Sequence record: MH595538.1
Direction: 5' to 3' (one strand)
Length of the DNA: 64,000 nt
This document shows positions 1-48,617 of the stretch, one piece after another. The notes beneath the pieces were generated by a model. The model saw only the letters and a list, made by a program, of their open reading frames with translations. It was not told where the DNA came from and searched no databases. Made by a program: the position numbers and the translations under genes. Every line of letters starts with the position of its first letter. Position 1 is the first letter of the stretch.

Positions 1-1
1 A

Positions 2-1114
2 ACTAAACTAGCCGTTGTAATTATGCGTGCACAACAACCAACTGATGCACACTTCTATCTTATCCGTAAAGCTTTATCAGTAGCTGAAGATGTACTCGTT
101 GTACTCGGCTCTACAAACCGAAGCTTATCGACAGTCAATCCTTTCTACTACCATCAGCGAGTTTCGCTTATTAAAGCGGGTCTAAAAGGCTTAGAGCATG
201 CTAGGGTTCAGTTTAAAGGATCTAAAGACTATGTCTGGTTGGATGATGAATGGGAAGGTGCAGTTGAAAGAACGGTGATGAATCATCTTTATCATATCAT
301 GCCAGTTGCTAAGTCAATGTCCGATGCACATAAGCATGTTGTCTTAGTGGCACATAAGAAAGACAAGTCTACTGCGGACTACGTTGAAATGTTTCCAAAG
401 TTCAAAAAGAACTACGTAGCTCCCTATCTTGTTTCAGCAGGCAATGGTACTGATGACCGTATTCTGTTAAACGCAACTGACGAACGACGTAAGTTCTTTG
501 TCGATGGCGACGTTGATTCACTGTACACTCCAGAAAGTGTCAAGCAGGCGCTTCGAGACTTCATGGACAGCAATCGTGAACAATACGAATACGTACAGCG
601 TCGATACGCGCAAATTGCAACAGCAAAGAAACCCTATGCGGGCTTGCAATGGGGAATTAAGTTCATTACAGCCGATCCATTGGTTGTCTGTAAAGGGCAT
701 GTTCTCTTAGGTAAGCGCGCAGCAGGTTACGGGGAAGGTCAATGGTGCATCCCCGGTGGTTACGTCGAACAGGATGAACTGATCGATGATGCCATGACTC
801 GTGAACTCTATGAAGAAACTTCAATCGACATTCCAGATCCGGCAATGAAGAATGCCCATAAAGGCACTCGCAAGTTCGAATATGTGGGTCGAGATGAACG
901 AGGTGACTTCACTACTTTCTGTGGTTTATTCGTACTGCATCCGTCTGCTGACGGTAGGCTACCTAAAGTAAAACCGCAAAGAGAAGAGATCACAGAAGTT
1001 CGATGGGTTCCGTTTGCCGACCTTGAAGGACTTGCGAAGCATATGTTCCTTGATCATTACTTTATCATTGAAATTATGCGTCGTGCTCAAGCCATTAACG
1101 GCAACACTCTGTAA
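2..1114 (+). CDS. nadM: Bifunctional NMN adenylyltransferase / ADP-ribose pyrophosphatase (NadM-Nudix, NatV-like), 5'-truncated by the window edge
   Basis: Frame is open from base 2 (TKLAVVIMRAQQPTDAH, a variant of the AVxIGRFQPxHxGH nucleotidyltransferase motif); VLGS..NPF motif; Nudix box GGYVEQDELIDDAMTRELYEETS; C-terminal MFLDHYFII. Confidence 0.92.
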   Translation, partial: TKLAVVIMRAQQPTDAHFYLIRKALSVAEDVLVVLGSTNRSLSTVNPFYYHQRVSLIKAGLKGLEHARVQFKGSKDYVWLDDEWEGAVERTVMNHLYHIMPVAKSMSDAHKHVVLVAHKKDKSTADYVEMFPKFKKNYVAPYLVSAGNGTDDRILLNATDERRKFFVDGDVDSLYTPESVKQALRDFMDSNREQYEYVQRRYAQIATAKKPYAGLQWGIKFITADPLVVCKGHVLLGKRAAGYGEGQWCIPGGYVEQDELIDDAMTRELYEETSIDIPDPAMKNAHKGTRKFEYVGRDERGDFTTFCGLFVLHPSADGRLPKVKPQREEITEVRWVPFADLEGLAKHMFLDHYFIIEIMRRAQAINGNTL

Positions 1115-1168
1115 GCAAGGGCTTACATTTAAACTACATTATCCCAATTAAAGAACCAGGAGGTTCAC

Positions 1169-2668
1169 ATGAACACATTACCTAAAAACCAAATCGCAGC
1201 GAATATGCCAGTCGGCGTTGATTTCCAAATGGATCTAACCGCACCTTATAGTTTAACTCCTCCGGTCCTCCTCTCCGTGGATAGTTACAAAGGTGAGCAC
1301 TATAAATACCTTAACTCTGACGTTGACTTCACTCAAGGGTACATCGAAGCACGTAAAGGAGATAAGGTACAGCAGGTCGCGGGCATTACTCGCCTTGCTA
1401 AACAGTTAGCCGTTGGGATCACGACTGATGACATTCTTTACTTTAGTATGTTTGCAGCCAAACACAGCTTTGGCCATGCGGCAATGCATAGCGAAGGATG
1501 GTCACGTATTGTTGATGAAATGGATGGTAATCTGCCATTAGAAATTCACGCTCTGCCAGAAGGCACAGTAGTGAAACCAGGACTACCAATCTTAGTTGTT
1601 CGCAATACCGTCGCCGGTTTCGGTTGGCTTGTGAACTATTTCATTGATATGATCTTAAAAGTTTGGAAAGACATGTCAGTGGCAGGTAAGGCGTTCCGCA
1701 TGAAACGCATTCTAAAGCGCATGGGCTCAAATACGATTAGTGATGCAGATCGGTTCGATTTCTGGCTAACCGTGTGCTTGCATGACTTTGGAGTGCGCTC
1801 TATCGGTACGTCTGAAGAAGCAGCAATCTCTGGCGTCGCAGCTAACCAGAATATTAGCGGTAGTGACAACTGGCCCGCTACTTGGCTCAACATGAAACTC
1901 TATGACTTAACCATGGATCAAATGCCCACTGGTTCTGTCGTAGCACTAGAGCACAATGTGATCCTAAGCGTCGGTGAAGAAGGAGAACATGAACTCCTGC
2001 TTAACTTCGCAAAAGACATATTGACGTCTGGTCGTGTCGGCAGTGTTTTAATTGATACTTACGACATAGACGCCGTACTTGAGATGTTTGCTAAAAATAA
2101 AGAGTTGCTTCTTCAATGGTTAGCAGAAGGCGACTATCAAGGTAAACTGGTATTCCGTCCTGACTCAGGTCATGAAATTGAAACACCTATTATGGTATGT
2201 GAGTTCCTGATGCGTACATTCGGATCAGTCACTAACGATAAAGGCTTCCGTGAACTAGACGGATGGCTAGGTGTTATTCAAGGAGATGGCGTAAATGAAG
2301 ACATGCTTGAAATGTTCGAGAATCGTCTTTATGAAACTGAATTGTCTGCACTGAACTTTGTCTTTGGCTGCGGCGGTGAATTGATTTCTAATCACACTCG
2401 CGATGACTACAGCTGGTGCGGTAAAGTGACAGTCAATACACTGAATGACGGTACTGAGGTGCCTTGTGGTAAATCTCCTAAATATGGCGCAGGTAAGAAG
2501 ACTAAACAAGGATACTTCCGTGTTTATGAAACTGATGGCGGCTGGGGATATGACCAAGTTGATAGCTTTGATCTCATGGAAGGGTTTTATTGTTACTTCT
2601 ACAACGGAGTAGCATTGAAACCACAGACATGGGATGAAGTGAAAGAACGCGCTTACTCTTACCTATAA
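1169..2668 (+). CDS. nadV: Nicotinamide phosphoribosyltransferase (NAMPT)
   Basis: Motifs VDSYK, LHDFGVRS, ALEH, LIDTYD, FRPDSG, IQGDGV, FGCGG; SD AGGAGG; adjacent to NadM-Nudix. Confidence 0.95.
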   Translation: MNTLPKNQIAANMPVGVDFQMDLTAPYSLTPPVLLSVDSYKGEHYKYLNSDVDFTQGYIEARKGDKVQQVAGITRLAKQLAVGITTDDILYFSMFAAKHSFGHAAMHSEGWSRIVDEMDGNLPLEIHALPEGTVVKPGLPILVVRNTVAGFGWLVNYFIDMILKVWKDMSVAGKAFRMKRILKRMGSNTISDADRFDFWLTVCLHDFGVRSIGTSEEAAISGVAANQNISGSDNWPATWLNMKLYDLTMDQMPTGSVVALEHNVILSVGEEGEHELLLNFAKDILTSGRVGSVLIDTYDIDAVLEMFAKNKELLLQWLAEGDYQGKLVFRPDSGHEIETPIMVCEFLMRTFGSVTNDKGFRELDGWLGVIQGDGVNEDMLEMFENRLYETELSALNFVFGCGGELISNHTRDDYSWCGKVTVNTLNDGTEVPCGKSPKYGAGKKTKQGYFRVYETDGGWGYDQVDSFDLMEGFYCYFYNGVALKPQTWDEVKERAYSYL

Positions 2669-2675
2669 CGTAAAT

Positions 2676-2695
2676 CCTCTCCCTCCGGGGAGAGG
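2676..2695 (+). terminator. Hairpin after nadV
   Basis: CCTCTCCC-TCCG-GGGAGAGG. Confidence 0.6.
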
Positions 2696-2723
2696 TACTC
2701 TCTTATTAAAAGGTTGCATTATT

Positions 2724-3338
2724 ATGAACGAAAAAGATTTAGCTAAATTGAATCACCCGCCGGAAGAATTAATGGATCCGTCTTGGCAGCAGCTTTCACT
2801 AGACGCTGCGGTAGAAGATATCGTGTTTCCGAAAGGCATTAATCATGGAGAATCTATTCTTAGAAGGCGCTACGGTCCGGAGGGTGCGACTTGTGAAGTA
2901 TATGACGCGCTGCCTAAGGATCCTGACGAGATACTAAAAAAACTACAAGCGCTTAATGCGGAGATAAAGACACTAACAGGCCCTTCATCTGACGCAGAAA
3001 GAAGAATGCATAAGTTCATCACTCTCATGCATCACGCAGGGGCTATGTCATCCATTCCGATGCATAAGATAGACTCGCTTTGGCCAGAAGGGCTATTAAG
3101 TCCCGAAGATCCAGAAAGGGAATTAATTCGTTATGCTCAGCTTCGAGAAAAGACAGTCAGAGATTTTGATGGAGACTCGATGATCTTGCCTCGAACTAAG
3201 CCAAATCACGAACCTGAAGTTATTTGGAAAAAGAAACAGAAAACAGTCGGCCCAGTAGGACAAGGGAAAGCCCCTAGGTCTAAACGCAAAACAAAACGTC
3301 AAGCTCAGAAACAATCTCGTAAAAACAATCGTAAATAA
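2724..3338 (+). CDS. Hypothetical protein with basic C-terminal tail
   Basis: 204-aa ORF ending KRQAQKQSRKNNRK, a tail shared with 15102..15695. Confidence 0.8.
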   Translation: MNEKDLAKLNHPPEELMDPSWQQLSLDAAVEDIVFPKGINHGESILRRRYGPEGATCEVYDALPKDPDEILKKLQALNAEIKTLTGPSSDAERRMHKFITLMHHAGAMSSIPMHKIDSLWPEGLLSPEDPERELIRYAQLREKTVRDFDGDSMILPRTKPNHEPEVIWKKKQKTVGPVGQGKAPRSKRKTKRQAQKQSRKNNRK

Positions 3339-3347
3339 GGAAGTCTC

Positions 3348-3848
3348 ATGGAAAAGCGCAAACCTGAATTATATGTCGTTACCGGAAAAACATCATTGCA
3401 CGTACGTGATTTTGGTGAAAGACTATATATGTCGAAAAATCCTCATTGGTGTAAGCACAGCATCTATCCTGAAAACCATAAATCGGTATTTGAATTAGCC
3501 GATGAACTTAAAAGACTTATTGCCGAGTCCTTTGAGAACGGCACTGATCTTATCATCACTACTTTATCTCCGATAGTGCCTGATATGATCAATAGCTTTA
3601 TGTTAAAGCGCATCTCCGTAGACGAACCTTATTATGAAACATGTCATGTTTATGATGTACTCTCTGATAATGCATCAAGGGACCGCAGCTTCAATTTCAA
3701 AGATGGAATATTACACCTGACTGCTCAAAAAGACTTAGAGGTCTTTTATCATGCATACCATGACTTGATGGCTGAAAGAAAAGCTCAAATAATGGAGCGC
3801 ATAACGACTCCAAGATCCTCCCTGAAACCTACTGACATTCCAGATTAA
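3348..3848 (+). CDS. Hypothetical protein, possibly a degenerate ABC/AAA_21-type ATPase fragment
   Basis: YPENHKS and IITTLSP resemble EPENHLHP and IITTHSP; no intact Walker A. Confidence 0.4.
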   Translation: MEKRKPELYVVTGKTSLHVRDFGERLYMSKNPHWCKHSIYPENHKSVFELADELKRLIAESFENGTDLIITTLSPIVPDMINSFMLKRISVDEPYYETCHVYDVLSDNASRDRSFNFKDGILHLTAQKDLEVFYHAYHDLMAERKAQIMERITTPRSSLKPTDIPD

Positions 3849-3872
3849 TCAAAGTTCATTAGAACTCAAACT

Positions 3873-3889
3873 CTATATTATCATAACGA
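3873..3889 (+). promoter_or_regulatory. Putative phage promoter motif, copy 1
   Basis: CTATATTATC-ATAA-CGA in the intergenic gap. Confidence 0.65.
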
Positions 3890-3915
3890 ATAAACCCAAC
3901 TAAGGAATCATTATT

Positions 3916-4743
3916 ATGTCAAAACAAAATAACTTCAGTTCTTTCGCCGTTTTTGTAGGCAGTATTGTCTCTGTATGTACCGTAGATGAATCAAAAGCTG
4001 ACCTGAGGACAATGATAAGCCGCCTGGTCCAGGATGGATTAGCTCAGAACAGTATGATCAACCCTACTGTAAGGATATATGGATTAGGAGGGGTAGGGGA
4101 TAGTCGCTTAACATATATGCGCATTGGAGATGTTGAGATTAATCGATTCATAGAAAGAGCTGTTATCAACGCCCCTTTAAAATTCGCTACTTTGGAACTG
4201 GCACAAAAAGCATTTGGAGACTGGCGAGATATTCCTATGACGGAAGCCGACGAGTATCAAGAACGTTTTACCATTAAAGCGATCTCGAAATATTTTCCAG
4301 ATCTATGGAAAGAGACTATCGAAGGCGGATGGATGATTCCTTATTCTAAATTGAAGCCTTTTATCGCAGAGGCACGCGATAAATATTCAGAACATGTGAA
4401 ATCAGAAAGTGCTTGTAAGTTCGATCCCACACGCCATTATCCCCAGCCAGAATTCGGAGGTCAATTCGGATGTTTTAGTTCTCCTGCCCCAGGAGCAACT
4501 AACCCTCTGAATATGACTATTATGCAGCTGGAACAAACCATTGCAGCTACGGAATCTCAATTGAATATGATGCGATATCAATTACAAACTATCAAGCAAT
4601 TGGCTGGTGTCCAATCCATGTCCCCAAGTCCTTATGTCCACCAAGGTCCTTATGCATCACCTATTGCCCCAGGCCAAGTCAATCCTCATAAAGAAAATAT
4701 GACTGCTAAGCAGTCACAATTCCGTACTGTTGATGACCAGTAA
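3916..4743 (+). CDS. Hypothetical protein with P/Q/G-rich C-terminus and coiled coil
   Basis: 275-aa ORF with SD; first gene after the promoter motif. Confidence 0.8.
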   Translation: MSKQNNFSSFAVFVGSIVSVCTVDESKADLRTMISRLVQDGLAQNSMINPTVRIYGLGGVGDSRLTYMRIGDVEINRFIERAVINAPLKFATLELAQKAFGDWRDIPMTEADEYQERFTIKAISKYFPDLWKETIEGGWMIPYSKLKPFIAEARDKYSEHVKSESACKFDPTRHYPQPEFGGQFGCFSSPAPGATNPLNMTIMQLEQTIAATESQLNMMRYQLQTIKQLAGVQSMSPSPYVHQGPYASPIAPGQVNPHKENMTAKQSQFRTVDDQ

Positions 4744-4785
4744 TTAAATAAACCCTAATCTTTTAATCTTACAAAAGGAAGAGTT

Positions 4786-5502
4786 ATGTCAACTCAAACA
4801 TTAAACATGTGGTCAGCGTTCAGCCCTAAAACAATTGTACGTGATTTAATGGACCTAAAGCTCGAAGACATTGGCTTCTTAGTCGTATTGATGGCCATTA
4901 TGTCGTGCGCAATGATCTATTGGGAAAGTGCATGGCTGGAATGGCTATCTTCACTCACTGGCGTCATGTGTGTATTTCTGGTGGCTCGTCGTAAACTATC
5001 CAACTACTTCTGGGGAATTATCAATGTAACGACTTATACTTACATTGCCTATAATGCGAAGTACTTCGGCGATACAATGCTGTTTGGATTGTTCTATACA
5101 CCGATTCAATTTATCGGTGCGTATCTATGGTCTAAGCACATGTTCGGTGAAAACGTGATCTCTCGCAAAATCGAGAGCTTCCGTGCTCTGTTTATGCTGG
5201 GTATAGGCGCTACTTTTATCACCTTTGGCTATGCAATGCTGTTAGAGTCGATAGGCGGTAATCTGCCTGCTGTGGATGCTTTCACAACAGTAGGTTCCGT
5301 ATTGGCTACCTTCTTTATGGTCTATGGTTATCGTGAGCAATGGTTGGTTTGGATTGCGATTAACCTAAGCTCTATTTACATGTGGGCGAATGTCTATATG
5401 GAAGATGGCACTGGCGTGGGTATGTTAGCGATGTGGTCTGTATATCTGATCAACTCGACTTACGGCACTTACATCTGGTTTAAAGGCTCTAAGAGCAATT
5501 AA
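4786..5502 (+). CDS. pnuC: Nicotinamide riboside transporter PnuC
   Basis: About 7 hydrophobic helices; motifs GVMCVFLVARRKLSNYFWG, IGAYLW, DAFTT, YREQWLVWIAIN. Confidence 0.88.
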   Translation: MSTQTLNMWSAFSPKTIVRDLMDLKLEDIGFLVVLMAIMSCAMIYWESAWLEWLSSLTGVMCVFLVARRKLSNYFWGIINVTTYTYIAYNAKYFGDTMLFGLFYTPIQFIGAYLWSKHMFGENVISRKIESFRALFMLGIGATFITFGYAMLLESIGGNLPAVDAFTTVGSVLATFFMVYGYREQWLVWIAINLSSIYMWANVYMEDGTGVGMLAMWSVYLINSTYGTYIWFKGSKSN

Positions 5503-7385: not shown

Positions 7386-7410
7386 GTTTAATCAATAAAG
7401 GAACATTATT

Positions 7411-7773
7411 ATGTTAGTTAAAAGCACCGAAGAATTGTGCCTATTGATGGCGGAAAAATGTATTGCAGCATGGAATGACATTCCTGGCATACTTGATTCT
7501 GGCGTTATCTTCACACAGGTAACTAAGAACCTGGCGTTTGATATTTCTGTCTTTCCAGAACGCGTAGAGATCTCCGGAGTAATGGGCTTATTGCCGAGCA
7601 CACTTATTATCTTTGCAAACGAAGAACCTGAAATTAAAATTACAGGTACCGATGAAACTGATGAAACATTCATCTTTCCAGAAATCGAAACGTATCTAAA
7701 GATGATGCGCATCGCTGAAGGGATCATTCGTACAATCATGCAGGAGAAAGAACTTTGGATTTCCAAAAACTAG
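7411..7773 (+). CDS. Hypothetical protein
   Basis: 120-aa ORF, SD AAGGA. Confidence 0.75.
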   Translation: MLVKSTEELCLLMAEKCIAAWNDIPGILDSGVIFTQVTKNLAFDISVFPERVEISGVMGLLPSTLIIFANEEPEIKITGTDETDETFIFPEIETYLKMMRIAEGIIRTIMQEKELWISKN

Positions 7774-24185: not shown

Positions 24186-24205
24186 GGTTCAACGAAATCT
24201 TAGAT

Positions 24206-24222
24206 CTATATTATCTAGGTGA
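24206..24222 (+). promoter_or_regulatory. Putative phage promoter motif, copy 4
   Basis: CTATATTATC-TAGG-TGA. Confidence 0.7.
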
Positions 24223-24302
24223 GACTGCTTGAGTAAAGCGTCTTATTCCTTGCTAATTGTAAATATTGCCGGCCCGCATCTGCGGGTTCCGGCATTCTTT
24301 TT
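24220..24302 (+). ncRNA. Candidate small RNA or attenuator leader
   Basis: Directly after the promoter motif: hairpin GAGAC.GCTT/AAGC.GTCTT, then TGCCGG-CCCGCA-TC-TGCGGG-TT-CCGGCA and TTCTTTTT. Confidence 0.4.
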
Positions 24303-24341: not shown

Positions 24342-24749
24342 ATGCTCCATTACTACAACTCTTATCCACGGGCATCCAAGATGCCTACACCAATTACTAC
24401 TGCGTTATTAAACGCACCAGATCGAATATTGCATATCATCGCTCCTTTTGAAAAGGATCGAATGCTAATGGCTAAGATGCTGCGTGCGCAGTTCATGGCC
24501 TTAGGACATTATGCATGGATCGATCAACCCAGTAACTTATTGAAAAGTGCTGGTGATTATGTACTCATTCAAAAGACCGGCAATGATCTTAAAAACTATC
24601 AAGATCAATTAGCCATGGCTAAACGAGGCGCTAACTTCATTGGCCATGAAAATAAGATCATGGTCGAACGCATAGACGATCGTCTCAAATTATACTTCCG
24701 TGGAATGACAACAGCATTCACACAAAAAGAACTTACTGCTTTTTACTAA
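24342..24749 (+). CDS. Hypothetical protein
   Basis: 135-aa ORF, SD AAGGA. Confidence 0.7.
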   Translation: MLHYYNSYPRASKMPTPITTALLNAPDRILHIIAPFEKDRMLMAKMLRAQFMALGHYAWIDQPSNLLKSAGDYVLIQKTGNDLKNYQDQLAMAKRGANFIGHENKIMVERIDDRLKLYFRGMTTAFTQKELTAFY

Positions 24750-24802
24750 ACCTAATTTACAAACTTTAAAAACTTAAACTTAATTTGCAAGGAATCATTA
24801 TT

Positions 24803-25318
24803 ATGAAAACTCTAGTATCTCTATTCGCAACTGTATTCGCTCTAGCAACTACTTCTGTTCAAGCTGTTGAACTTGATGTGTTTAACATCGGTGACTGGGA
24901 CAAAGCTGAACCTTCAATCATTATCGGCGCAATGTCTTATCACTTTGATGCCGAAGATCACAAATACCTAAATGAAACTCACCCTGCAATCGGCATTGAG
25001 CTATGGGACATCTCTGTTGTTTACACTAGTGAAAACAGCTGGGAAGAACAAAGCTTCTATGTGGCATGGCGTCCAGACGTACTAGAAACTCAGCATCTAG
25101 ACATCTCTATCGATCTGGGTTTCTCTACTGGCTACTATGAAGATTCTTACGTAGTACGCGACGGCTACCGTTACAGCCGTACTGAGGGCATCAACATCAT
25201 TGATGGTATTCAGCCTCTTGGCGCTATTACTTTCGAAGGTAAAATCAACAAAGAGTTCAGTATCGAGGCCACTATTTCATACGGCGTTGGTATGCTATCT
25301 GGTCGTTACAACTTCTAA
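24803..25318 (+). CDS. Outer-membrane beta-barrel protein, PagP-like (lipid A acyltransferase-like)
   Basis: Sec signal peptide ending VQA; SYHFD, NETHPAIGIE and ENSWEEQS motifs; alternating strands; C-terminal YNF (BAM signal). Confidence 0.7.
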   Translation: MKTLVSLFATVFALATTSVQAVELDVFNIGDWDKAEPSIIIGAMSYHFDAEDHKYLNETHPAIGIELWDISVVYTSENSWEEQSFYVAWRPDVLETQHLDISIDLGFSTGYYEDSYVVRDGYRYSRTEGINIIDGIQPLGAITFEGKINKEFSIEATISYGVGMLSGRYNF

Positions 25319-25324
25319 AAATAC

Positions 25325-25348
25325 AGCCCTGCTTAATTAAGCAGGGCT
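25325..25348 (+). terminator. Perfect palindrome / hairpin
   Basis: AGCCCTGCTTAATTAAGCAGGGCT. Confidence 0.6.
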
Positions 25349-25384
25349 AATCTCTTCAATAAATTTTTTACATGAGGCATTATT

Positions 25385-26533
25385 ATGCGTAAATTTAAGT
25401 TTCCTTTTCTTAATCACAAAAAAGAAAAATTGACTGCTGTTACCAGCGAGAATAATCTTCCGGAGTGGGAAGATTATCGTGAAAGTAAAAGATTCACTGA
25501 CATGTACTCTTTTTACAGCGAATGTATAAAGGCTGCGATTGAATCTGGGCTGACATGGGCTGAAGAACTTAATGAATGGATCGAAGGGGTATTCCGGGGA
25601 GATGCTAGCGATGCCCTGACTTCCGCTATCTTAAATCCAGACTGTCATGCTTTACTGGAATGTATTAATGAAGCGAGCAAGCCAATAGGTCCTCCTCTAA
25701 AAGACCGCACAGGCGTAGCTTACATTTCGCCGGTGGATATACATGCTGATGTCAACATCAATGGACGCATTGCATTATTCTGTGATTTGAAAGCAGATAT
25801 GGTCTCTGGAAATAATACTGGCGTGTTTGTCTCCATTGCCTTTCCTCACAAAAAGCAAATAGATCCATCAAATATCGACGAGCGACTTCTAGAGCAAGGA
25901 GCATCTAGCTTTTATTACATTGGCGATATTGCACGTATTCGAGATAAACTGAATGAGGTCCATCCAGAAATAAACGTTATTCCTGTTTCATGTTCCGGCA
26001 TCACTATCAGACAAAGCGGGTATTTCAGATGTTTCCATGATGCTTATACAGAGTCTGAATATGGTTTCTCTGGAATTGATGGCTTGATATATAGACATAT
26101 CGGACCTAGTATGAGTGAGGCATTGGGCACGAATGCAAATATCTATTCGGCAGTAGGAGTCGGCAGCGGTGCTGAATGCACAACACTCCAGATCGATACT
26201 TCGGAAAAAGAAGCGATAATGATTTCACATCATGAATATGTTTCTTTGACCTACGTCGCTGAAAAACTACAGGTAAAGAAGGCTATTTCCTTGCGCGATG
26301 AAGGTAAGAGTTTCGTTCTCGTTACTCCCGATGGGAAAAGCAGAGTTGACGGATTTATCGATGATGAGGGAGAGGTAGCATCCCATGGCATTCTAGGTGT
26401 AATTGCACTTGGTGAAAAATGGTTCGTCGAAGAAGTGAAGTCTTTTGATGACAGTTATTGTCGAAGTACTGAAAATTGGGAAAAGCTCAAAAGGTCAGGC
26501 ATCGACGTTGACATATTAGATTGCGAAAAATAA
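25385..26533 (+). CDS. Hypothetical protein (paralog of 26559..27926)
   Basis: Shared N-terminal Y..YR.S..F....FY.ECI.A......EEL.EW..GV..G. Confidence 0.8.
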   Translation: MRKFKFPFLNHKKEKLTAVTSENNLPEWEDYRESKRFTDMYSFYSECIKAAIESGLTWAEELNEWIEGVFRGDASDALTSAILNPDCHALLECINEASKPIGPPLKDRTGVAYISPVDIHADVNINGRIALFCDLKADMVSGNNTGVFVSIAFPHKKQIDPSNIDERLLEQGASSFYYIGDIARIRDKLNEVHPEINVIPVSCSGITIRQSGYFRCFHDAYTESEYGFSGIDGLIYRHIGPSMSEALGTNANIYSAVGVGSGAECTTLQIDTSEKEAIMISHHEYVSLTYVAEKLQVKKAISLRDEGKSFVLVTPDGKSRVDGFIDDEGEVASHGILGVIALGEKWFVEEVKSFDDSYCRSTENWEKLKRSGIDVDILDCEK

Positions 26534-26558: not shown

Positions 26559-27926
26559 ATGATATTCGGATTAAAATTTACACCACCCTGGAAAAAGACC
26601 CTGGGTGACGGAAAGGTCGCATGCAATCAAGGCGATAAAGAAGTGCATGTGGATCCAGTAAGGGACTCTTACGCATCTTATCGCAAAAGCGACGACTTCA
26701 AAGCATTACTGTGTTTTTACGTTGAATGTATAGAAGCTTCCGAATCTAACAAATACATTCCTACGGAAGAGCTAAAGGAGTGGTATAAAGGAGTACTGGA
26801 AGGACAGTTATCATCGGAGACTTTATGGAAACCATTATCCATTAATGCCAAGGCATTCCTGATAACTATGCAAGCAGCAGATTGTTCCTCTCATAATTCT
26901 CTGAGAGCACCTAATAACACTGATTACATTCCCCGTAGTTATAGAGCAACCGAGGATTTACTCAGTGAGTCTCTCGTACTGGTTTGTGAGCACAGCGCCA
27001 ATCCGGAAACGAAGTATGTTTCCGTAGCCGCGCCGGTGAGACCCAATGAGTCGGTTATTCCAATGACTTACAGCTGTATTGGCAATGGTGAAGAAGTATG
27101 CGCTAAGATCAATCGACTGCATCCTCACCTGACCATCCTGTATGTAAAATCTAAAGCATTGACTGATTTCAGCGTTGCACATATCGAATCGATGAAGAAA
27201 AGGGATGTTCTCAAAAATCGCGTATGGCGAGCGATAGACGGAAACTTCTATCAATGGATAGGCGAGGTTAAAACTAAGTCACTTGGAACTCATACGACAT
27301 TCTTAGTACAGGGGACATTTTATTCCAATTATGAACATCTTTTGAATATTGATGATTCTAGCAATAAAGTGATTCTTGCAAATAGTGCATTGGAAACTAA
27401 GTTAAACCATCTTATGAGAATAGGGGAAAAGGAAAAGGTAAGTCGCCATCCATACACCGGCTATAGTTTGCTGATGATCAATAGCCAGAGTGGAACTATT
27501 AAGCGAACTTACTATGAAGGTGAGACATTAAGGTTTATTGATGGTGCCGAAGTAGAAGACATCGGAGTGAAATGGTTCGTTCACGATAAGATACGAGACC
27601 GCTATACGCTCGATGACATTATTGAAAGTGAGCTTCAGTTGACTCCTTCTCAACAAAAGGCACTGGCTAAGATCGACGATGGGTTTGCACGAAGCGTAAG
27701 TTCTTTACCTATTGATCGTCTTGAACAAGCCATTAAAATGACTCGCGCTTCTGACGGTGAGAGAATAGCAGTGGCTACGACCAAGGTCGATGCCGCAATA
27801 AAAGAATACCTTTATTCTCGCATCAGAGAAGGCGACGAGGAAGGCTATTCGGTCATTGAACAATTGGACAACTATCTTCCAAAAGGAGATTTACATGAAA
27901 GAGAATCTTCAGATTCTATGGAGTGA
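26559..27926 (+). CDS. Hypothetical protein (paralog of 25385..26533)
   Basis: Same shared segment; also LG.KWFV.....D. Confidence 0.8.
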   Translation: MIFGLKFTPPWKKTLGDGKVACNQGDKEVHVDPVRDSYASYRKSDDFKALLCFYVECIEASESNKYIPTEELKEWYKGVLEGQLSSETLWKPLSINAKAFLITMQAADCSSHNSLRAPNNTDYIPRSYRATEDLLSESLVLVCEHSANPETKYVSVAAPVRPNESVIPMTYSCIGNGEEVCAKINRLHPHLTILYVKSKALTDFSVAHIESMKKRDVLKNRVWRAIDGNFYQWIGEVKTKSLGTHTTFLVQGTFYSNYEHLLNIDDSSNKVILANSALETKLNHLMRIGEKEKVSRHPYTGYSLLMINSQSGTIKRTYYEGETLRFIDGAEVEDIGVKWFVHDKIRDRYTLDDIIESELQLTPSQQKALAKIDDGFARSVSSLPIDRLEQAIKMTRASDGERIAVATTKVDAAIKEYLYSRIREGDEEGYSVIEQLDNYLPKGDLHERESSDSME

Positions 27927-29216: not shown

Positions 29217-29239
29217 ATTAATCAAAAGGAAACATTATT

Positions 29240-29764
29240 ATGTTAAATAAACAAACTCCAGTCAAACACCCAGGTGACCTAGCATTTGCACTGCAGCGCT
29301 TACTGTCAATTAAATCACTCACCGGCTATGAAGCTTGCAAGATTCTAGATAATCTAGCAAAGGGCTGGTCGCATCAACAGATCTATCGCTGCTTTACCAA
29401 GTATAAAGGCATTTACTGGGACTTCACCTTGGTGCCTCAAGAAGGCAAGCCAGATAAAAAGGTATACTGGGCGTTGCCTGATGCCGAGCAAATCGCCCTG
29501 CCTAAAGAACTGCGTATTGAAGTGGCCTGTAATGTCTGTACGCGTAAAGAGATCTATAAAATGATTAATCTACTCATTACTGATGAGAAGCGCGTAAAGA
29601 AAGCACTGGAGCAAGCGGGGACTGATCAATTGAAGTCTTTCATTTGCAATGTTGAATTGACGCGGCTAAATGGCGAGTTCGAACGATTGAACATGGCATT
29701 AAATAGTTCGCTGAATGTGGAAGATGGTCCATATCCGTTTATCCTTGCATCAGTGATGAAATAG
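29240..29764 (+). CDS. Hypothetical protein
   Basis: 174-aa ORF with SD. Confidence 0.8.
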   Translation: MLNKQTPVKHPGDLAFALQRLLSIKSLTGYEACKILDNLAKGWSHQQIYRCFTKYKGIYWDFTLVPQEGKPDKKVYWALPDAEQIALPKELRIEVACNVCTRKEIYKMINLLITDEKRVKKALEQAGTDQLKSFICNVELTRLNGEFERLNMALNSSLNVEDGPYPFILASVMK

Positions 29765-43534: not shown

Positions 43535-44428
43535 ATGACGCAAACATTAGATGATATTCGAGTACTTAAACGCAATGGTAAATTGGAACCAGTAGACCTG
43601 GATAAGATTCACCGCGTATTACATTGGGCTGCTGAAGGCCTAGCCGGTATCTCAATATCCGACGTCGAATTAAAAGCTCACGTACAGTTCTTTGACGGCA
43701 TCGAGACTAAAGACATCCATGATCTGTTAGTCAAAGCGGCAGCTGAGCTCATTACCGCAGAAGAACCAGACTATCAGTACTTCGCTGCACGCCTAAAGCT
43801 ATTCTCATTGCGCAAAGAAGCATACGGTCAGTTTGAACCACCCAAACTGGTTGACCACATTAAAAACATGATTGACATTGGCAAGTATGACATGGAAATA
43901 CTTGGCATGTATACGCCAGAAGATTTTGAATACTATGAAGGCATCATCAATCACTGGAATGACATGAATTATGCTTACGCAGCCATGGAACAATTCTCTG
44001 GTAAATACTTAGTCAAGAACCGTGATACTGGCCGTATATATGAGACCCCTCAATTTATCAATATCATGGCCCCTTTGACCATGTTTGGTAAATATCCAGA
44101 GCCTCAGCGTCGTGAACTTGTAACGGATTTCTATCAAGCTTTGGTTGACGGTAAGTTATCTCTACCAACACCTATTATGTCAGGTGTGCGAACACCTACT
44201 CGCCAATTCAGCAGCTGTACTCTTATCGATTGTGATGATACTCTAGAGTCTATTATTGCGACCACTGGCGCTATTGTCCGCTATGCGGCTAAGCGAGCAG
44301 GCATTGGTATCAACGCAGGTCGTATTCGCGGTATTGGCTCTCCTATCCGTGATGGAGAAGCAGTATCGACAGGGGAAGTTGGTTTCCTTAAATTGTTTAA
44401 CTCGGCAGTGGGATGCTGCTCACAGGGT
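43535..44428 (+). CDS. nrdA: Ribonucleotide reductase class Ia alpha subunit, exon 1 (298 aa)
   Basis: ATP-cone VLKRNG; PTPIMSGVRT, FSSCTL; ends CSQG. Confidence 0.96.
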
Positions 44429-44882
44429 GAATATTGCCCCGCATAGAGGTAACTCTATGTTGTAAACTCCTTTAATTGCTGGGACTCCCTAAAGCTTGCT
44501 TGCCTCTTTGAGGAGCCGAAAGGCAGAAACAAGTAGCAAGATGGGCTAAGACGATAGTAAGTCTAAGGTCTTGATAATGGGACATCAGCCTTCGCATCAA
44601 GTAATGTGATTCAACGACTATCGAAAGCTTAACCTGAGAAGAAATATCTCGGGGGATGATAAGCTTACCTGTGGGTAAGTGAAGCGAGTAGAGTACGGCC
44701 CAAGCGGGTGGGTTCCCAATCCCTTAAATGGAAACAAGGAGGGTCCTTGATTTGGTAACAGAATCAAGGATCGTGATATAGTCTCGTCAGTCAAACTTAT
44801 CCCTTTCGGTTTGACATTCTATGGAAACATAGAGCTGCAGGTAATGCTGCGGACTGGTCTAGCGAACCAGTTGAAGATTACG
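44429..44882 (+). mobile_element. Group I intron (IA2-like, 454 nt, no ORF) in nrdA
   Basis: Removal restores CSQG|GVRKGSA in frame (762 aa in total); exon-terminal U pairs with GCCC (P1); P2 CATAGAG-GTAA-CTCTATG; R CAACGACTAT and S GATATAGTC; ends in G. Confidence 0.92.
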
Positions 44883-46277
44883 GGTGTAAGAAAGGGATCA
44901 GCAACTACCTTTTTCCCGATATGGCACATCGAAGCCCGTCAATTAATGGAACTTAAAAACAACCGTGGTGTTGAAGAAAACCGTGTTCGTACTATGGACT
45001 ATGGTTTCCAGATTAACCGTTTCTTCTACGAGCGCCTACAGCGTGGTAAGACTATTCGTTTATTCTGTCCTTCAGAAGTTCCTGGGCTATACGAAGCATT
45101 CTTCCAAGATCAAGCTGAGTTTGCAAGACTGTATGAAAAGTATGAAAAGATGCCTCACTTGCGTCATCATGATGTTGCCGCTAAAGATCTATTCGGTACA
45201 TTGATGCAGGAGCGCGCTGGTACAGGCCGTATCTATATACAGCACGTCGACCATACAAACATGTACGGTAATTTCATTGAAGAAGAAGCGCCAACGTTCA
45301 TGTCTAACCTGTGTGTAGAAATCACACTGCCTACTAAGCCACTCAAGTTTGATAACGACCCAGAAGGTGAAATTGCTCTATGTACTTTAGCGGCATTTAA
45401 CCTTGGCGTGATTACACTCGAAGAGTTCCCTCGTTTGGCTGAACTGGTTGTGCGTTTCCTAGATGCGCTATTAGACTATCAAGATTATCCTTCTGAAGCA
45501 GCACGTAATTCATCGATGAAGCGCCGTACTTTAGGGGTTGGCATCATCAACTATGCATACTGGATCGCTAAGAATGGATTTAAGTATTCAGACGGCAGTG
45601 CAAACAACATGACTCACCTTTGGATTGAGAACATGCAGTACAGCCTAATGAAAGCATCAGTTCAGTTGGCAAAAGAGAAAGGTGCTTGTCCTGCGTTCAA
45701 TCAAACTAAGATGGCCAAAGGTATTCTCCCGATTGATAATTACAAGCGTGAAGTCGATGAACTGCATACCCAAGAACTAACTTGCGATTGGGAAGGTCTG
45801 CGTGCCGATATCGCTAAGTATGGTATGCGTAACTCTACTATGTCTGCGTTCATGCCTTCTGAAACATCATCTCAGATTGCTAATGCAACAAACGGCATTG
45901 AGCCACCTAACAAGCTTATGACTCGTAAGGCATCTAAAGACGGTATTCTTTCCCAGGTTGTACCTGACGTCGAGAACTTACGTGACTCTTATGAGCTTCG
46001 TTGGAACATGCCAGACAACATTGGTTATATTCACCTAGTTGGCATTATGCAGAAGTTCGTATGTCAGGCAATATCTGCGAATACGAACTACGATCCTGCT
46101 AAGTTCCCAGGCGGAAAAGTGCCAATGAACGTTATGCTTAAAGAACTCATGACGTGTTATAAATATGGTGTTAAAACTCTGTACTATCATAACACGGAAG
46201 ACGGTAGCAACGACCCAGTAGCTAACGCTATTGAGAAAGAAGACGAAAGCTGCGGCGGTGGTGGCTGTAAGATTTAA
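44883..46277 (+). CDS. nrdA: Ribonucleotide reductase class Ia alpha subunit, exon 2
   Basis: SNLCVEI active site, PSETSSQI, KTLYY, C-terminal CGGGGC. Confidence 0.96.
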   Translation, partial: GVRKGSATTFFPIWHIEARQLMELKNNRGVEENRVRTMDYGFQINRFFYERLQRGKTIRLFCPSEVPGLYEAFFQDQAEFARLYEKYEKMPHLRHHDVAAKDLFGTLMQERAGTGRIYIQHVDHTNMYGNFIEEEAPTFMSNLCVEITLPTKPLKFDNDPEGEIALCTLAAFNLGVITLEEFPRLAELVVRFLDALLDYQDYPSEAARNSSMKRRTLGVGIINYAYWIAKNGFKYSDGSANNMTHLWIENMQYSLMKASVQLAKEKGACPAFNQTKMAKGILPIDNYKREVDELHTQELTCDWEGLRADIAKYGMRNSTMSAFMPSETSSQIANATNGIEPPNKLMTRKASKDGILSQVVPDVENLRDSYELRWNMPDNIGYIHLVGIMQKFVCQAISANTNYDPAKFPGGKVPMNVMLKELMTCYKYGVKTLYYHNTEDGSNDPVANAIEKEDESCGGGGCKI

Positions 46278-46288
46278 TCCGGCACCAT

Positions 46289-46319
46289 AAGGGGAGGTGT
46301 GAATACTTCCCCTTTTTTT
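46289..46319 (+). terminator. Hairpin plus T-run between nrdA and nrdB
   Basis: AAGGGGAGGT...ACTTCCCCTT-TTTTT. Confidence 0.6.
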
Positions 46320-46354
46320 AACTTATTAAAAATTGAATTTATCAGGAGACTAAA

Positions 46355-47059
46355 GTGTCTAAACAGGTTATCTTCAAAGCAGGTCCAACAAACTACCTTA
46401 ATCAACCAATGTTCTTCGGCGACTCTGTATCAACCGCTCGCTATGATCAGCAGACATATCCGTTCTTTGAAAAGCTTATCGAAAAGCAGCTTTCATTCTT
46501 TTGGCGACCTGAAGAAGTAGATGTCTCTGCAGACCGTCGCGATTGGCAAGGACTCTCTAAAGCGGAGAAACATATCTTTATCTCTAATCTTCAGTATCAG
46601 ACACTGCTAGATTCTATCCAAGGCCGTAGCCCCAATATCGCATTCTTGCCAATCACCTCAGTACCTGAAGTAGAGACATGGATTGAAACCTGGTCATTCT
46701 CAGAAACGATTCACTCTCGTTCGTACACGCATATTATGCGTAACATCCTCACAGGTGAAGAAATGGACGAGGTGTTTAATGGCATTACTACCATTCCTGA
46801 AATCATTGCTCGCGCCGAGCGTTTTGGCCGTGCTTACGAAGAACTGATTGAATGCAACAATGCTCTGCTGCAGTCTAAAGTAGACGTACCTAACCGAGCT
46901 GAATTGGAGCGTGAACAAAAACGTAAGTTCCTGCGTGCCCTTGTAACAGTAAACGGTTTAGAAGCTTTAGCATTCTACGTATCATTTGCATGCTCATGGG
47001 CATTTGCCGAACGTTCTATCATGGAAGGTAACGCTAAGATCATTAGACTCATCGCCCGT
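46355..47059 (+). CDS. nrdB: Ribonucleotide reductase class Ia beta subunit, exon 1 (235 aa)
   Basis: GTG start with SD AGGAG; [27 protein letters not shown]; ends IIRLIAR. Confidence 0.96.
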
Positions 47060-48197
47060 TAATATGGCGGCTTCATGGAGTGATCCATGAATGCACACCT
47101 CGTGAAATCAGGGGACTCCGGTAACAGGAAATCCTGAGGTTGCTCTATATCAAATCACCTCCATATAAAACGTTTTGGTTTTATAGCGAGAGGTTTTATA
47201 TGAAATGATTTGTTATGGTGAAATATGGATGGATCATAAAGAAAGACCTGATGATTATATTGTCAGTAATTTTGGCAGGGTCTTTTCCAGAAAAAGTTGT
47301 ATGATGTTAAAGCAGTCACTAACCAAGGCAGGATATCTAACTTATGGGAGTAGGTTAGGATCGGTCCATCGTTTGATTGTGACGCATTATTTAGGACCCA
47401 TTCCCAAAGGAATGGTAGTTAATCATAAAAATGGAATTAAGACAGATAACTGGATTGATAACCTAGAGATAACTACTCATTCTGCTAATACCCAACATGC
47501 TTACGATACGGGTTTAGCCAAAGGGAAAAAGGGCGCTGCTAACTCACAGGCTAAAGTAACAGAAGAAATCATTCTTGATATTTATAAGATGTTCGAAGCT
47601 GGCTTTAGTAACCAAGACATTAGTAAAAGATACGGACTGCATGACCGCTACGTATCTCTCATAAGACATGGAAAAAGATGGAAGTATCTGTATGTAAGAT
47701 ACGGTAAGACTTTCCCACGATCGTATGAATTTGTCTTTCGAAAAGAACAGATTCTTATGGCAAGGGAACTATTACTCAAGGGCCATAACAATTTAACTAT
47801 TGCAATGGCAACCGGAATAGAGAAGTCTAACATATCCAGATTCCGACATGGAAAAATGAATGCTTGGTGTGAGTGGATGGCAATATACGACAGAGCAACC
47901 GCAACGACTATCGAAAGCTTAACTTGAGAAGAAATCTCTCGAGGGATGATAAGCTTACCCGCGGGTAAGTGAAGCGAGTAGAGTACAGCCACAAGCTTAT
48001 GGTGGTCCTGAAAGGGATAGCGGAGAAATCCGTAATGGAAGCGCGAGGGGTCTCTTATCTGGTAACAGGGTAAGAGATCATGATATAGTCTGGCCCGGCC
48101 TTAACGGCCTATCTGTGAATACACAGGTATCCTAGGTAATGCTAGGAGCAGTATATGAAACTATACGGGTGTGTTTTGCGAACACACTGAACATACG
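47060..48197 (+). mobile_element. Group I intron (IA2-like, 1138 nt) with HNH homing endonuclease in nrdB
   Basis: Removal restores IAR|DETLH (iron ligands; 374 aa in total); exon CCGU pairs with GCGG (47067-70); P2 TTCATGGA-GTGA-TCCATGAA; R and S elements; ends in G. Confidence 0.93.
47205..47927 (+). CDS. Intron-encoded HNH homing endonuclease (I-HmuI-like architecture with two HTH-like repeats)
   Basis: VSNFGRV; VHRL...VNHKNGIKTDN..DNLE..T...N..H; 3' end overlaps the intron R element. Confidence 0.92.
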   Translation: MICYGEIWMDHKERPDDYIVSNFGRVFSRKSCMMLKQSLTKAGYLTYGSRLGSVHRLIVTHYLGPIPKGMVVNHKNGIKTDNWIDNLEITTHSANTQHAYDTGLAKGKKGAANSQAKVTEEIILDIYKMFEAGFSNQDISKRYGLHDRYVSLIRHGKRWKYLYVRYGKTFPRSYEFVFRKEQILMARELLLKGHNNLTIAMATGIEKSNISRFRHGKMNAWCEWMAIYDRATATTIESLT

Positions 48198-48617
48198 GAT
48201 GAAACTTTACATTTAGCCGGCACACAGTACATGATCAATGAACTGGCTAAAGGCGCTCAAGGAGCTGAATGGAAAGAGCTCTTTGAAGAAATGCGTGATG
48301 AGCTAGGTGAGATCATGCTAGCTATTGCCATGCAGGAAAAAGAGTGGGGTCGCTACCTGTTTAAAGACGGTACGATGATCGGCCTTAACTCAAACATTAT
48401 AGACCAGCTTATCGAGTACTTCTGTAATATCCGTTGTGCGGCTATTAAACTAGATAAGCCTTTTGCAGAACAGAAAAAGAATCCAATTGGATGGTTTAAC
48501 TCTTGGATTCAATCCGCCGGTGTTCAAGTAGCACCGCAAGAAACAGAGCAGTCTTCTTACCTTGTCGGTCAAGTAGATTCTACTATTGATGAAGACGCTC
48601 TAGACATGGATCTTTAA
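48198..48617 (+). CDS. nrdB: Ribonucleotide reductase beta subunit, exon 2
   Basis: DETLH, QEKEWGRYLF, QVAPQETEQSSY. Confidence 0.95.
   Translation, partial: DETLHLAGTQYMINELAKGAQGAEWKELFEEMRDELGEIMLAIAMQEKEWGRYLFKDGTMIGLNSNIIDQLIEYFCNIRCAAIKLDKPFAEQKKNPIGWFNSWIQSAGVQVAPQETEQSSYLVGQVDSTIDEDALDMDL

Follow-up and report, generated by a model that had tools for sequence, protein, structure and literature searches.

ORF206 of Vibrio phage BONAISHI encodes a predicted outer-membrane beta-barrel that may be a very divergent PagP-type enzyme

The stretch of 64,000 nucleotides analysed in this study (hereafter 'the window') is identical to the sequence of Vibrio phage BONAISHI in record MH595538.1, with window base 1 corresponding to record base 186001. 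Within this window, open reading frame 206 (ORF206; AXH70947.1; 24803-25318, + strand) was deposited under the name 'hypothetical protein'. On the basis of a structural model, ORF206 is confidently predicted to be a secreted eight-stranded outer-membrane barrel, and we estimate a probability of about 0.5 that it represents a very divergent PagP-type outer-membrane acyl enzyme. An initial annotation of the same DNA had described it as a PagP-like enzyme of a lytic jumbo phage, and BONAISHI, which infects a coral pathogen, is indeed strictly lytic (PMC6207643). The PagP idea itself is not new, because PHROGs and RefSeq already name relatives of the protein 'PagP'; ORF206 is an unannotated member of this known PagP-labelled family. 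On weak sequence evidence, the label is being passed on to dozens of phage genes, and it has entered the discussion of virulence factors. The present analysis sorts the features that define PagP into those that are present in ORF206 and those that are missing.

Results and Discussion

ORF206 carries the export signals and the predicted fold of a small outer-membrane barrel

The reading frame was confirmed as initially drawn: it opens with the ATG at 24803, closes with the stop codon at 25316-25318 and encodes 171 residues. A program-made list of open reading frames also offers an alternative upstream start, a TTG at 24785, but the ATG is favoured because it is preceded by AAGGAA at a distance of 8 nucleotides and stands in a recurring start context. 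A near-identical context, (A)AGGAA-N-CATTATT-ATG, is found at 3900-3918, 7396-7413, 24789-24805, 25370-25387 and 29225-29242. The GC content is flat across ORF206 at about 0.40, and the gene therefore bears no sign of recent transfer. The features of the gene and of the encoded protein that relate to export and fold are the following.

24789-24794, + strand: ribosome-binding site AAGGAA of ORF206, 8 nucleotides 5' of the ATG, as read from the sequence
24803-25318 (including the stop codon), + strand: ORF206, predicted outer-membrane barrel precursor of 171 amino acids (phrog_3600, E 1.1e-18; AlphaFold2 predicted local distance difference test score, pLDDT, 90.6)
24803-24865, + strand: signal peptide, residues 1-21, with a predicted cut after V-Q-A; sequence reading, helix 2-15 in the model
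24866-24913, + strand: mature N-terminal extension, residues 22-37; coil with pLDDT 62-69, predicted to be periplasmic and non-helical
25136-25207, + strand: loop 3, residues 112-135; long, predicted to be extracellular, the most variable and indel-rich part of the family
25286-25315, + strand: strand 8 (residues 162-170 in the model) with the C-terminal Y-x-F assembly signal

A Sec signal peptide is recognisable at the N-terminus by a Lys at position 2, a hydrophobic core and V-Q-A before V22, and an equivalent N-terminus is seen in the alignment of all full-length family members. ORF206 contains no Cys and is therefore no lipoprotein. The C-terminus is Y-N-F, the usual assembly signal of outer-membrane barrels. 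Both the cleavable signal peptide and the terminal Phe of the initial annotation were thus upheld. The terminal residue is F in 17 of 26 representative family members, and Y169 is present in 14.

AlphaFold2 gave a pLDDT of 35 when run without an alignment, and a usable model was obtained only with an alignment of 26 relatives. With this alignment, ORF206 was modelled with a pLDDT of 90.6, a predicted template-modelling score (pTM) of 0.78 and eight long strands, comprising residues 38-47, 59-67, 70-75 and 84-95 (strands 1-4) and residues 99-108, 136-147, 152-159 and 162-170 (strands 5-8). A short helix (50-55) is found in loop 1, loop 2 spans residues 76-83, and the long loop 3 (112-135) contains a hairpin. 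Every strong match to a PDB fold in a Foldseek search was an eight-stranded outer-membrane barrel, which bears out the small beta-barrel postulated at the outset, and the top match was PagP (3gp6; E 9.8e-5; template-modelling scores, TM-scores, of 0.48/0.52). Outer-membrane barrels have both termini in the periplasm, and loops 1-4 of ORF206 are therefore predicted to be extracellular. The N-terminal extension is present, and mutually conserved, in 10 of the 26 representatives, which make up the 'long' subfamily only. An eight-stranded barrel, a signal peptide and a C-terminal aromatic residue, all of which are present, are not discriminating, because this fold is common to OmpA, OmpX and Ail.

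A polar rim is conserved on the predicted extracellular side of the barrel

Conservation was counted in the alignment of the 26 family representatives. Y74, N78 and G106 are invariant, and S45, H47, N57, G64, S79 and S84 are at least 90% conserved. The near-invariant set consists of G42, S45, H47, N57, G64, Y74, N78, S79, S84, G106, G110, Y111 and P138. Together with E58 and the pair N/H60-P61, all of these residues fall at extracellular strand ends or in loop 2. Variation is found in the turns on the periplasmic side and in loop 3.

24935-24943, + strand: S45-Y46-H47 at the extracellular end of strand 1 (S in 24/26, H in 25/26); aligns with PagP His33
24971-24994, + strand: N57-E58-T-H60-P61-A-I-G64 at the extracellular start of strand 2; aligns with N-E-R-P of PagP
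25034-25054, + strand: loop 2 from N78-S79 through S84 (N78 26/26, S79 25/26, S84 24/26)
25118-25135, + strand: G106-F-S-T-G110-Y111 at the extracellular end of strand 5
25214-25216, + strand: P138 near the extracellular end of strand 6 (24/26); paired by hhalign with an invariant Pro of PagP (precursor P152)

In the strand-2 motif, N57 is kept in 24 of the 26 sequences, E58 in 18, N/H60 in 25, P61 in 21 and G64 in 25. The corresponding counts for the strand-5 motif are 26 for G106, 24 for A/S108, and 25 each for G110 and Y111. The three motifs that had been singled out by the initial annotation (residues 45-49, 57-64 and 77-80) are conserved in this alignment and lie beyond chance.

Strand alternation across the alignment also allowed an assignment of residues to the barrel lumen. 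The lower lumen would be polar (E66, S71, D100, R104, T143, E145, S166 and K168) and the upper lumen small or apolar (G42, A62, G64, V73, V75, T88, G106, A108, I137, L139, G141, V162 and M164). A fixed polar extracellular rim above a cavity lined by small or apolar residues is the pattern of an outer-membrane enzyme, not that of the Ail/OmpX/Lom type.

This pattern bears directly on the view that ORF206 is a non-catalytic barrel of the OmpX/Ail/Lom or OmpA type, with a structural or surface-masking role, which would alter adsorption or the envelope by its mere presence. Lom, OmpX and Ail share with ORF206 the eight-stranded barrel and a size of about 150-170 residues, with TM-scores of 0.3-0.45, and phages of the lambda type are known to carry Lom (phrog_108), a barrel of the same kind. 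Moreover, the fold scores of OmpA, Ail and OmpX almost equal that of PagP, and one family member matches the generic OMP_b-brl model of Pfam weakly (E 0.074). In surface barrels of the Ail/OmpX/Lom type, however, the loops are variable and the membrane core is conserved. The ORF206 family shows the opposite, as its extracellular rim is kept, and the invariant residues of this rim, among them His, Ser and Asn, are polar. In addition, a polar lumen would be expected in a barrel of the OmpA/OmpX type, whereas the upper lumen of ORF206 appears to be composed of Gly, Ala and apolar residues. The PHROG assignments differ as well: ORF206 does not match phrog_108, while OmpX matches phrog_108 (E 9e-38) and not phrog_3600. 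Furthermore, Lom is known from temperate phages, whereas the ORF206 family occurs mostly in virulent ones. We therefore regard a purely non-catalytic barrel as rather unlikely.

ORF206 resembles PagP in a collinear set of residues

As the PagP reference, we used E. coli K-12 pagP from NC_000913.3, in which precursor His58 corresponds to mature His33 and precursor D101-S102 to mature Asp76-Ser77. Catalytic roles have reportedly been assigned to His33, Asp76 and Ser77. A single BLASTP comparison of ORF206 with E. coli PagP gave an E value of 0.004, and hhalign aligned the family profile with 22 PagP sequences over 94 columns with a probability of 7% and an E value of 0.005. These scores are weak. 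Nevertheless, three such alignments (the BLASTP and two hhalign alignments) share one collinear register, in which H47 is paired with His33, N57-E58 with N72-E73 of the precursor, P61 with P, W68-D69 with W-D, P91 with P, G106 with G and P138 with P. The pairing of Y74 with a Tyr and of N78-S79 with Asp76-Ser77 is found by hhalign only, as BLASTP moves the N78-S79 segment by three residues. Most of the PagP partner residues are invariant in the 22 PagP sequences.

ORF206 matches phrog_3600, which carries the label 'PagP', over residues 2-144 with 68.4 bits. E. coli PagP matches the same profile at an E value of 1.3e-6, and OmpX, OmpA, OmpW and PldA do not match it. Among the profile comparisons, this cross-match is the only one that is specific to PagP. 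Fragment searches placed S45 and H47 at phrog_3600 columns 194 and 196 (S45-Y46-H47 corresponding to columns 194-196), and N78 and S79 at columns 226 and 227. PagP residue 40 falls on column 178, so that His58 would fall on column 196, the same as H47, if the segment 40-58 contains no insertion or deletion.

Like ORF206, PagP (PF07017; PDB 1THQ and 3GP6) is an eight-stranded outer-membrane barrel of similar size with collinear conserved residues; loops 1 and 2 are shorter in ORF206. In PagP, the substrate is accommodated in a hydrophobic cleft within the barrel (PMC2887491), to which the predicted apolar upper lumen of ORF206 would be comparable.

Controls do not single out PagP

A considerable number of observations weigh against a PagP-type enzyme. 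Firstly, the clustering of the rim residues and the pocket were derived from strand alternation only and not from model coordinates. Secondly, the fold scores fail to separate PagP from OmpA or Ail, as OmpA was found by Foldseek at an E value of 1.0e-4, about the same as the 9.8e-5 of PagP, with TM-scores of about 0.5 for all. The comparison with PagP by AlphaFold and Foldseek that had been proposed as a check thus ranked PagP first, with OmpA practically equal to it. Thirdly, the PagP family of Pfam (PF07017) was not matched by any of the 26 relatives even at E values of up to 1, and the family profile found no PDB chain at an E value of 10, although PagP is in the PDB. When the signal peptides were left out, hhalign scored mature PagP at 16.5, OmpX at 15.3, the OmpA barrel at 21.3 and OmpW at 25.4; column-shuffled PagP profiles reached a mean of 12.3 and a maximum of 21.5. 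A trimmed PagP profile scored 17.8 on another local alignment, and the original register was not the top one after trimming. The HMMER scores of PagP in both directions were inside the range of controls and shuffles. As the controls did not single out PagP, homology to PagP is not claimed here as demonstrated. That OmpA and OmpW score at least as well as PagP against the family profile also speaks in favour of the non-catalytic barrel discussed above.

The cross-match in PHROGs has to be read with similar care. The score of PagP against phrog_3600 comes mainly from residues 69-186 and not from the His region. The C-terminal 70 residues of PagP contribute 19 of the 28.7 bits, and the match of ORF206 ends at residue 144. 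This phrog may therefore be a mixed family, and the cross-match is no independent proof.

Two further features of PagP are also affected. PagP has an amphipathic N-terminal helix of 19 residues with a conserved Trp, which has been reported to be dispensable for catalysis (PMC2887491). This helix is missing in ORF206, where residues 22-37 form a coil, and the segment is lacking in 16 of the 26 relatives. In addition, the position of PagP Asp76 is occupied by Asn in all 26 members, while S79, the partner of Ser77, is kept in 25 of them.

The parallels to PagP drawn in the initial annotation therefore stand in part: the pairing of H47 with His33, of N57-E58 with N-E and of S79 with Ser77 was recovered, as was the replacement of Asp76 by Asn, but with weak scores that the controls equalled. 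Likewise, its 'PagP-like enzyme' is favoured by the conserved polar rim, the top fold match and phrog_3600, and disfavoured by the absence of a Pfam PagP match and of the N-terminal helix. We conclude that the ORF206 family may work like, and may descend from, PagP-type enzymes, and that it should be called 'PagP-like' at most, since it lacks several of the features that define PagP.

Wider searches with PagP gave little. A metagenome scan with the PagP alignment returned near-identical enterobacterial PagP only, and the PagP profile was therefore not broadened. A tblastn search of phages with E. coli PagP gave only two weak matches in Ralstonia phages and no obvious intermediate.

The OmpW score of 25.4, which was the best in the hhalign controls, raises the question of whether ORF206 could be a channel of the OmpW/AlkL type that passes a lipid or apolar compound through the lipopolysaccharide layer. 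Indeed, OmpW, OprG and AlkL are among the fold matches, and the upper lumen is predicted to be apolar. However, the OmpW match spans the C-terminal 30 residues only, which represent a generic assembly signal. OmpW also falls in a different PHROG, and a passive channel would have no need of an invariant rim of His, Ser and Asn. Such a channel is accordingly considered most improbable.

The rim residues could also serve a different chemistry. A lipid hydrolase, i.e. a PagL-like deacylase or an OMPLA-like phospholipase, could use S45-x-H47 together with N57/E58 as a triad and might weaken the outer membrane towards lysis. In ORF206, S45 and H47 are two residues apart on strand 1, and strand 2 next to it contributes a conserved Asn and a conserved Glu. 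PagL has a Ser-His-Glu triad and a conserved Asn on an eight-stranded barrel (PMC4402001); like ORF206, it is a small outer-membrane barrel in which a Ser and a His share a strand, two positions from each other, and the strand beside it bears an acidic or amide residue. The invariance of Asn, rather than Asp, at the position of PagP Asp76 would also suit a hydrolase. On the other hand, ORF206 and its 26 relatives gave no Pfam match to PagL or any lipase family, the 50 best PDB fold matches, headed by PagP, do not include PagL, and E. coli PldA does not match phrog_3600. Furthermore, the order S-x-H is the reverse of the order in PagL. ORF206 is located amid metabolic and replication genes, behind a presumed early-type promoter-like motif, and its annotated neighbours include no lysis gene. 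Because of this gene position, a lysis role is ranked low. Altogether, a hydrolase has to be taken seriously as an alternative but appears unlikely.

Lastly, the rim may belong to a phage-specific class of outer-membrane enzymes with a Ser-His-Asn chemistry of its own, rather than to an offshoot of PagP. Virulent phages of Aeromonas and Vibrio would make such enzymes early to re-tailor lipopolysaccharide or lipids of the outer leaflet and thereby prevent phages from binding to the infected cell and its debris. We put this forward as a tentative possibility. If true, it would provide, as judged from the literature that we searched, the first characterised membrane-embedded lipid enzyme that lytic phages use for such a purpose.

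The ORF206 family is small and overwhelmingly phage-borne

A tblastn search identified relatives of ORF206 in 45 other phage records, with 28-36% identity over 60-96% of the protein. The resulting 46 phage records comprise 35 of Aeromonas phages, 9 of Vibrio phages (BONAISHI included) and 2 of the "Stenotrophomonas" phage IME13. The carriers are T4-like Straboviridae, the Ackermannviridae phage YC and several jumbo phages. As these virulent T4-like, Ackermannviridae and jumbo phages possess the family, a role restricted to lysogeny cannot explain its distribution. No conserved neighbour gene was found among the phage relatives.

When 1.84 billion representative proteins were searched exhaustively with HMMER, only 31 matches were returned, about 28 of which are true members. 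Three long proteins among the matches (P0023, P0024 and P0027) turned out to be unrelated repeat proteins. The two metagenomic members that were examined are both on phage-like contigs. In one metagenomic relative (P0007), the signal peptide and the N-terminal extension are set apart by roughly 50 additional residues with a high content of Ala, Thr, Glu and Pro, which look like a flexible periplasmic linker. A word-indexed protein search returned the query alone and, when the family alignment was used, just two further members; a scan of viral contigs found phage YC again and nothing else. ORF206 itself had no match in Pfam at E values of up to 10, nothing relevant in NCBIfam, where no PagP model was matched, and no match among PDB chains when searched as a single sequence.

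In RefSeq, relatives of ORF206 are named 'antimicrobial peptide resistance and lipid A acylation protein PagP', whereas the GenBank originals read "hypothetical". The relatives named in this way include gp168 of Vibrio phage YC and proteins of Aeromonas phages 25, AS-gz and D6 and of phage IME13. Like ORF206, the phrog_3600 and RefSeq relatives have a signal peptide, a barrel and the S-x-H, N-E-x-x-P and N-S motifs. ORF206, as a member of the 'long' subfamily, differs from the Aeromonas-phage forms by its 16-residue N-terminal extension and its longer loop 3, both of which are missing there. The family name 'PagP' is a computational label, and we found no experimental study of any member in the literature. 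PagP-like proteins of three integrase-encoding V. coralliilyticus phages have been discussed in a 2026 preprint (10.64898/2026.09.21.753358), and a PagP-like gene has been noted in a Burkholderia phage (PMC10269572).

Outside phages, a motif-based scan of 185,579 species genomes found two Psychromonas loci only, one of which is the best BLAST match named in the BONAISHI paper (PMC6207643). In P. aquimarina (L010, 6101-8564) and P. ossibalaenae (L011, 5477-8111), the homologue lies about 1 kb from a gene of the CdsA family (PF01148); the cytidylyltransferases that this gene encodes in the two species share 92% identity. The two blocks of DNA are 87-91% identical, their order is swapped, and they are flanked by unrelated cellular genes. 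The pair looks like a small mobile unit of two genes, as if inserted independently or through a circular form. We considered whether these copies derive from a prophage but rejected this, as their flanks consist of ordinary cellular genes. The CdsA neighbour may link the barrel to lipid metabolism, by association alone. Among 72,556 plasmids, a single relative was detected on a 341-kb megaplasmid of Vibrio breoganii (NZ_CP016179.1, 216618-216899); it is 34% identical over residues 11-111 and annotated as hypothetical.

Possible mode of action of a PagP-type barrel during infection

In the reading that we favour, the protein would be exported via Sec, its signal peptide would be cut after residue 21, and the mature protein would insert into the host outer membrane as an eight-stranded beta-barrel. 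The extracellular rim would then be formed by S45 and H47 (strand 1), N57, E58 and N/H60 (strand 2), N78, S79 and S84 (loop 2) and Y111 (strand 5), and the Gly/Ala/apolar upper lumen below it could hold an acyl chain. The constellation of His, Ser and Asn may take or cleave an acyl chain from an outer-leaflet lipid, either lipid A or a mislocalised phospholipid. As a consequence of such acyl chemistry, the infected Vibrio cell would have an altered lipopolysaccharide layer. The phage could benefit from a modified cell surface in the latent period, with fewer phages or own progeny adsorbing, or from an envelope that stays tighter until lysis. Superinfection exclusion, receptor masking and stabilisation of the infected cell had been put forward as possible roles in the initial annotation. 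In this reading, the gene, its signals for export, the fold, the pattern of conservation and the near-confinement to phages were observed or modelled, and catalysis, substrate, acyl pocket, timing and the advantage for the phage are inferred.

If these barrels are active enzymes of lipid A or of the outer leaflet, remodelling of the host's outermost lipids during infection would be an activity of virulent phages and not of prophages alone. This would bear on superinfection exclusion and on the loss of progeny to cell debris. It would also bear on the safety review of therapy phages, for which BONAISHI is a candidate, as PagP-type changes of lipid A affect antimicrobial-peptide resistance in pathogens.

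ORF206 is probably co-transcribed with ORF205 behind a promoter-like motif

ORF206 is part of a long same-strand array of non-structural genes that includes functions in nicotinamide adenine dinucleotide (NAD) salvage, DNA ligase, thymidylate kinase and ribonucleotide reductase. The features around the gene are the following.

24196-24222, + strand: promoter-like AT-rich motif with the core TCTATATTA at 24205-24213; candidate start of the ORF205-ORF206 unit
24268-24301, + strand: imperfect GC-rich hairpin with a trailing T-run, in the ORF205 leader downstream of the motif; read from the sequence, simple terminator scan negative
24342-24749, + strand: ORF205, hypothetical protein of 135 amino acids, the upstream gene; no PHROG or PADLOC match
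25324-25349, no strand assigned: perfect hairpin of 11 base pairs (6 of them G-C) just after the ORF206 stop codon; terminator scan
3872, 7368, 8056, 13931, 14708, 23579, 24205, 29199, 34831, 41660, 47144, 51283, 55924 and 59479, + strand: copies of YCTATATHA
60547, - strand: the single minus-strand copy of YCTATATHA

The gap between ORF205 and ORF206 measures 53 nucleotides and contains neither a motif nor a hairpin, and the two genes are probably co-transcribed. The promoter-like motif at 24205 lies 129 nucleotides upstream of ORF205. Its core, TCTATAT[A/C/T]A (YCTATATHA), is present 15 times in the window, whereas 5.7 copies were expected and every shuffle yielded fewer than 15. Fourteen of the 15 copies are on the coding strand, and most of the intergenic ones are located 41-45 nucleotides before a start codon. 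The sites upstream of other genes have an extended consensus in common, which reads GTTCA ... TCTATAT ... TGA ... AATCAA. A sigma-70 promoter scan did not exceed chance level.

BONAISHI possesses genes for virion and non-virion RNA polymerases of the phiKZ-like type (PMC6207643). In jumbo phages with RNA polymerases of their own, the one motif that is detectable by bioinformatics has been an early promoter wherever it was tested (PMC7598289). Given the phage's own RNA polymerases and this precedent, early expression of the ORF205-ORF206 unit is plausible by analogy. The initial annotation had guessed that the barrel acts early in infection, and the promoter-like motif lends this guess indirect support.

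Concerning the hairpins, the one at 24268-24301 may be the terminator of ORF204, placed after the next promoter, or an attenuator in the leader. The hairpin at 25324-25349 was called on the minus strand, because its T-run is on that side, and is probably a transcript end or a stability element. Similar hairpins are present 3' of many genes in the window.

Other genes in the window

PHROG scans of ORF203-205 and ORF207-209, as well as PADLOC scans of ORF205, ORF206, ORF207 and ORF208, gave no match. The two genes directly downstream of ORF206, namely ORF207 (25385-26533) and ORF208 (26559-27926), are paralogues, with 22% identity over 323 residues (E 9e-15); no relationship was found between ORF203 and ORF204.

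Ribonucleotide reductase alpha (within 43535-48617) is annotated as two open reading frames, 43535-44446 and 44844-46277, which are 397 nucleotides apart. The beta subunit is likewise annotated as two open reading frames (46355-47062 and 48231-48617), with an HNH endonuclease gene (47205-47927) between them. This split layout suggests introns or a homing element; at the gathering score, Rfam detected no group I or group II intron at these genes.

The first part of the window (1-5502) contains a cluster for NAD salvage, annotated as nicotinamide-nucleotide adenylyltransferase, nicotinamide phosphoribosyltransferase and a nicotinamide riboside transporter. In Vibrio phage K566, a member of the ORF206 family is located two genes from a nicotinamide phosphoribosyltransferase gene.

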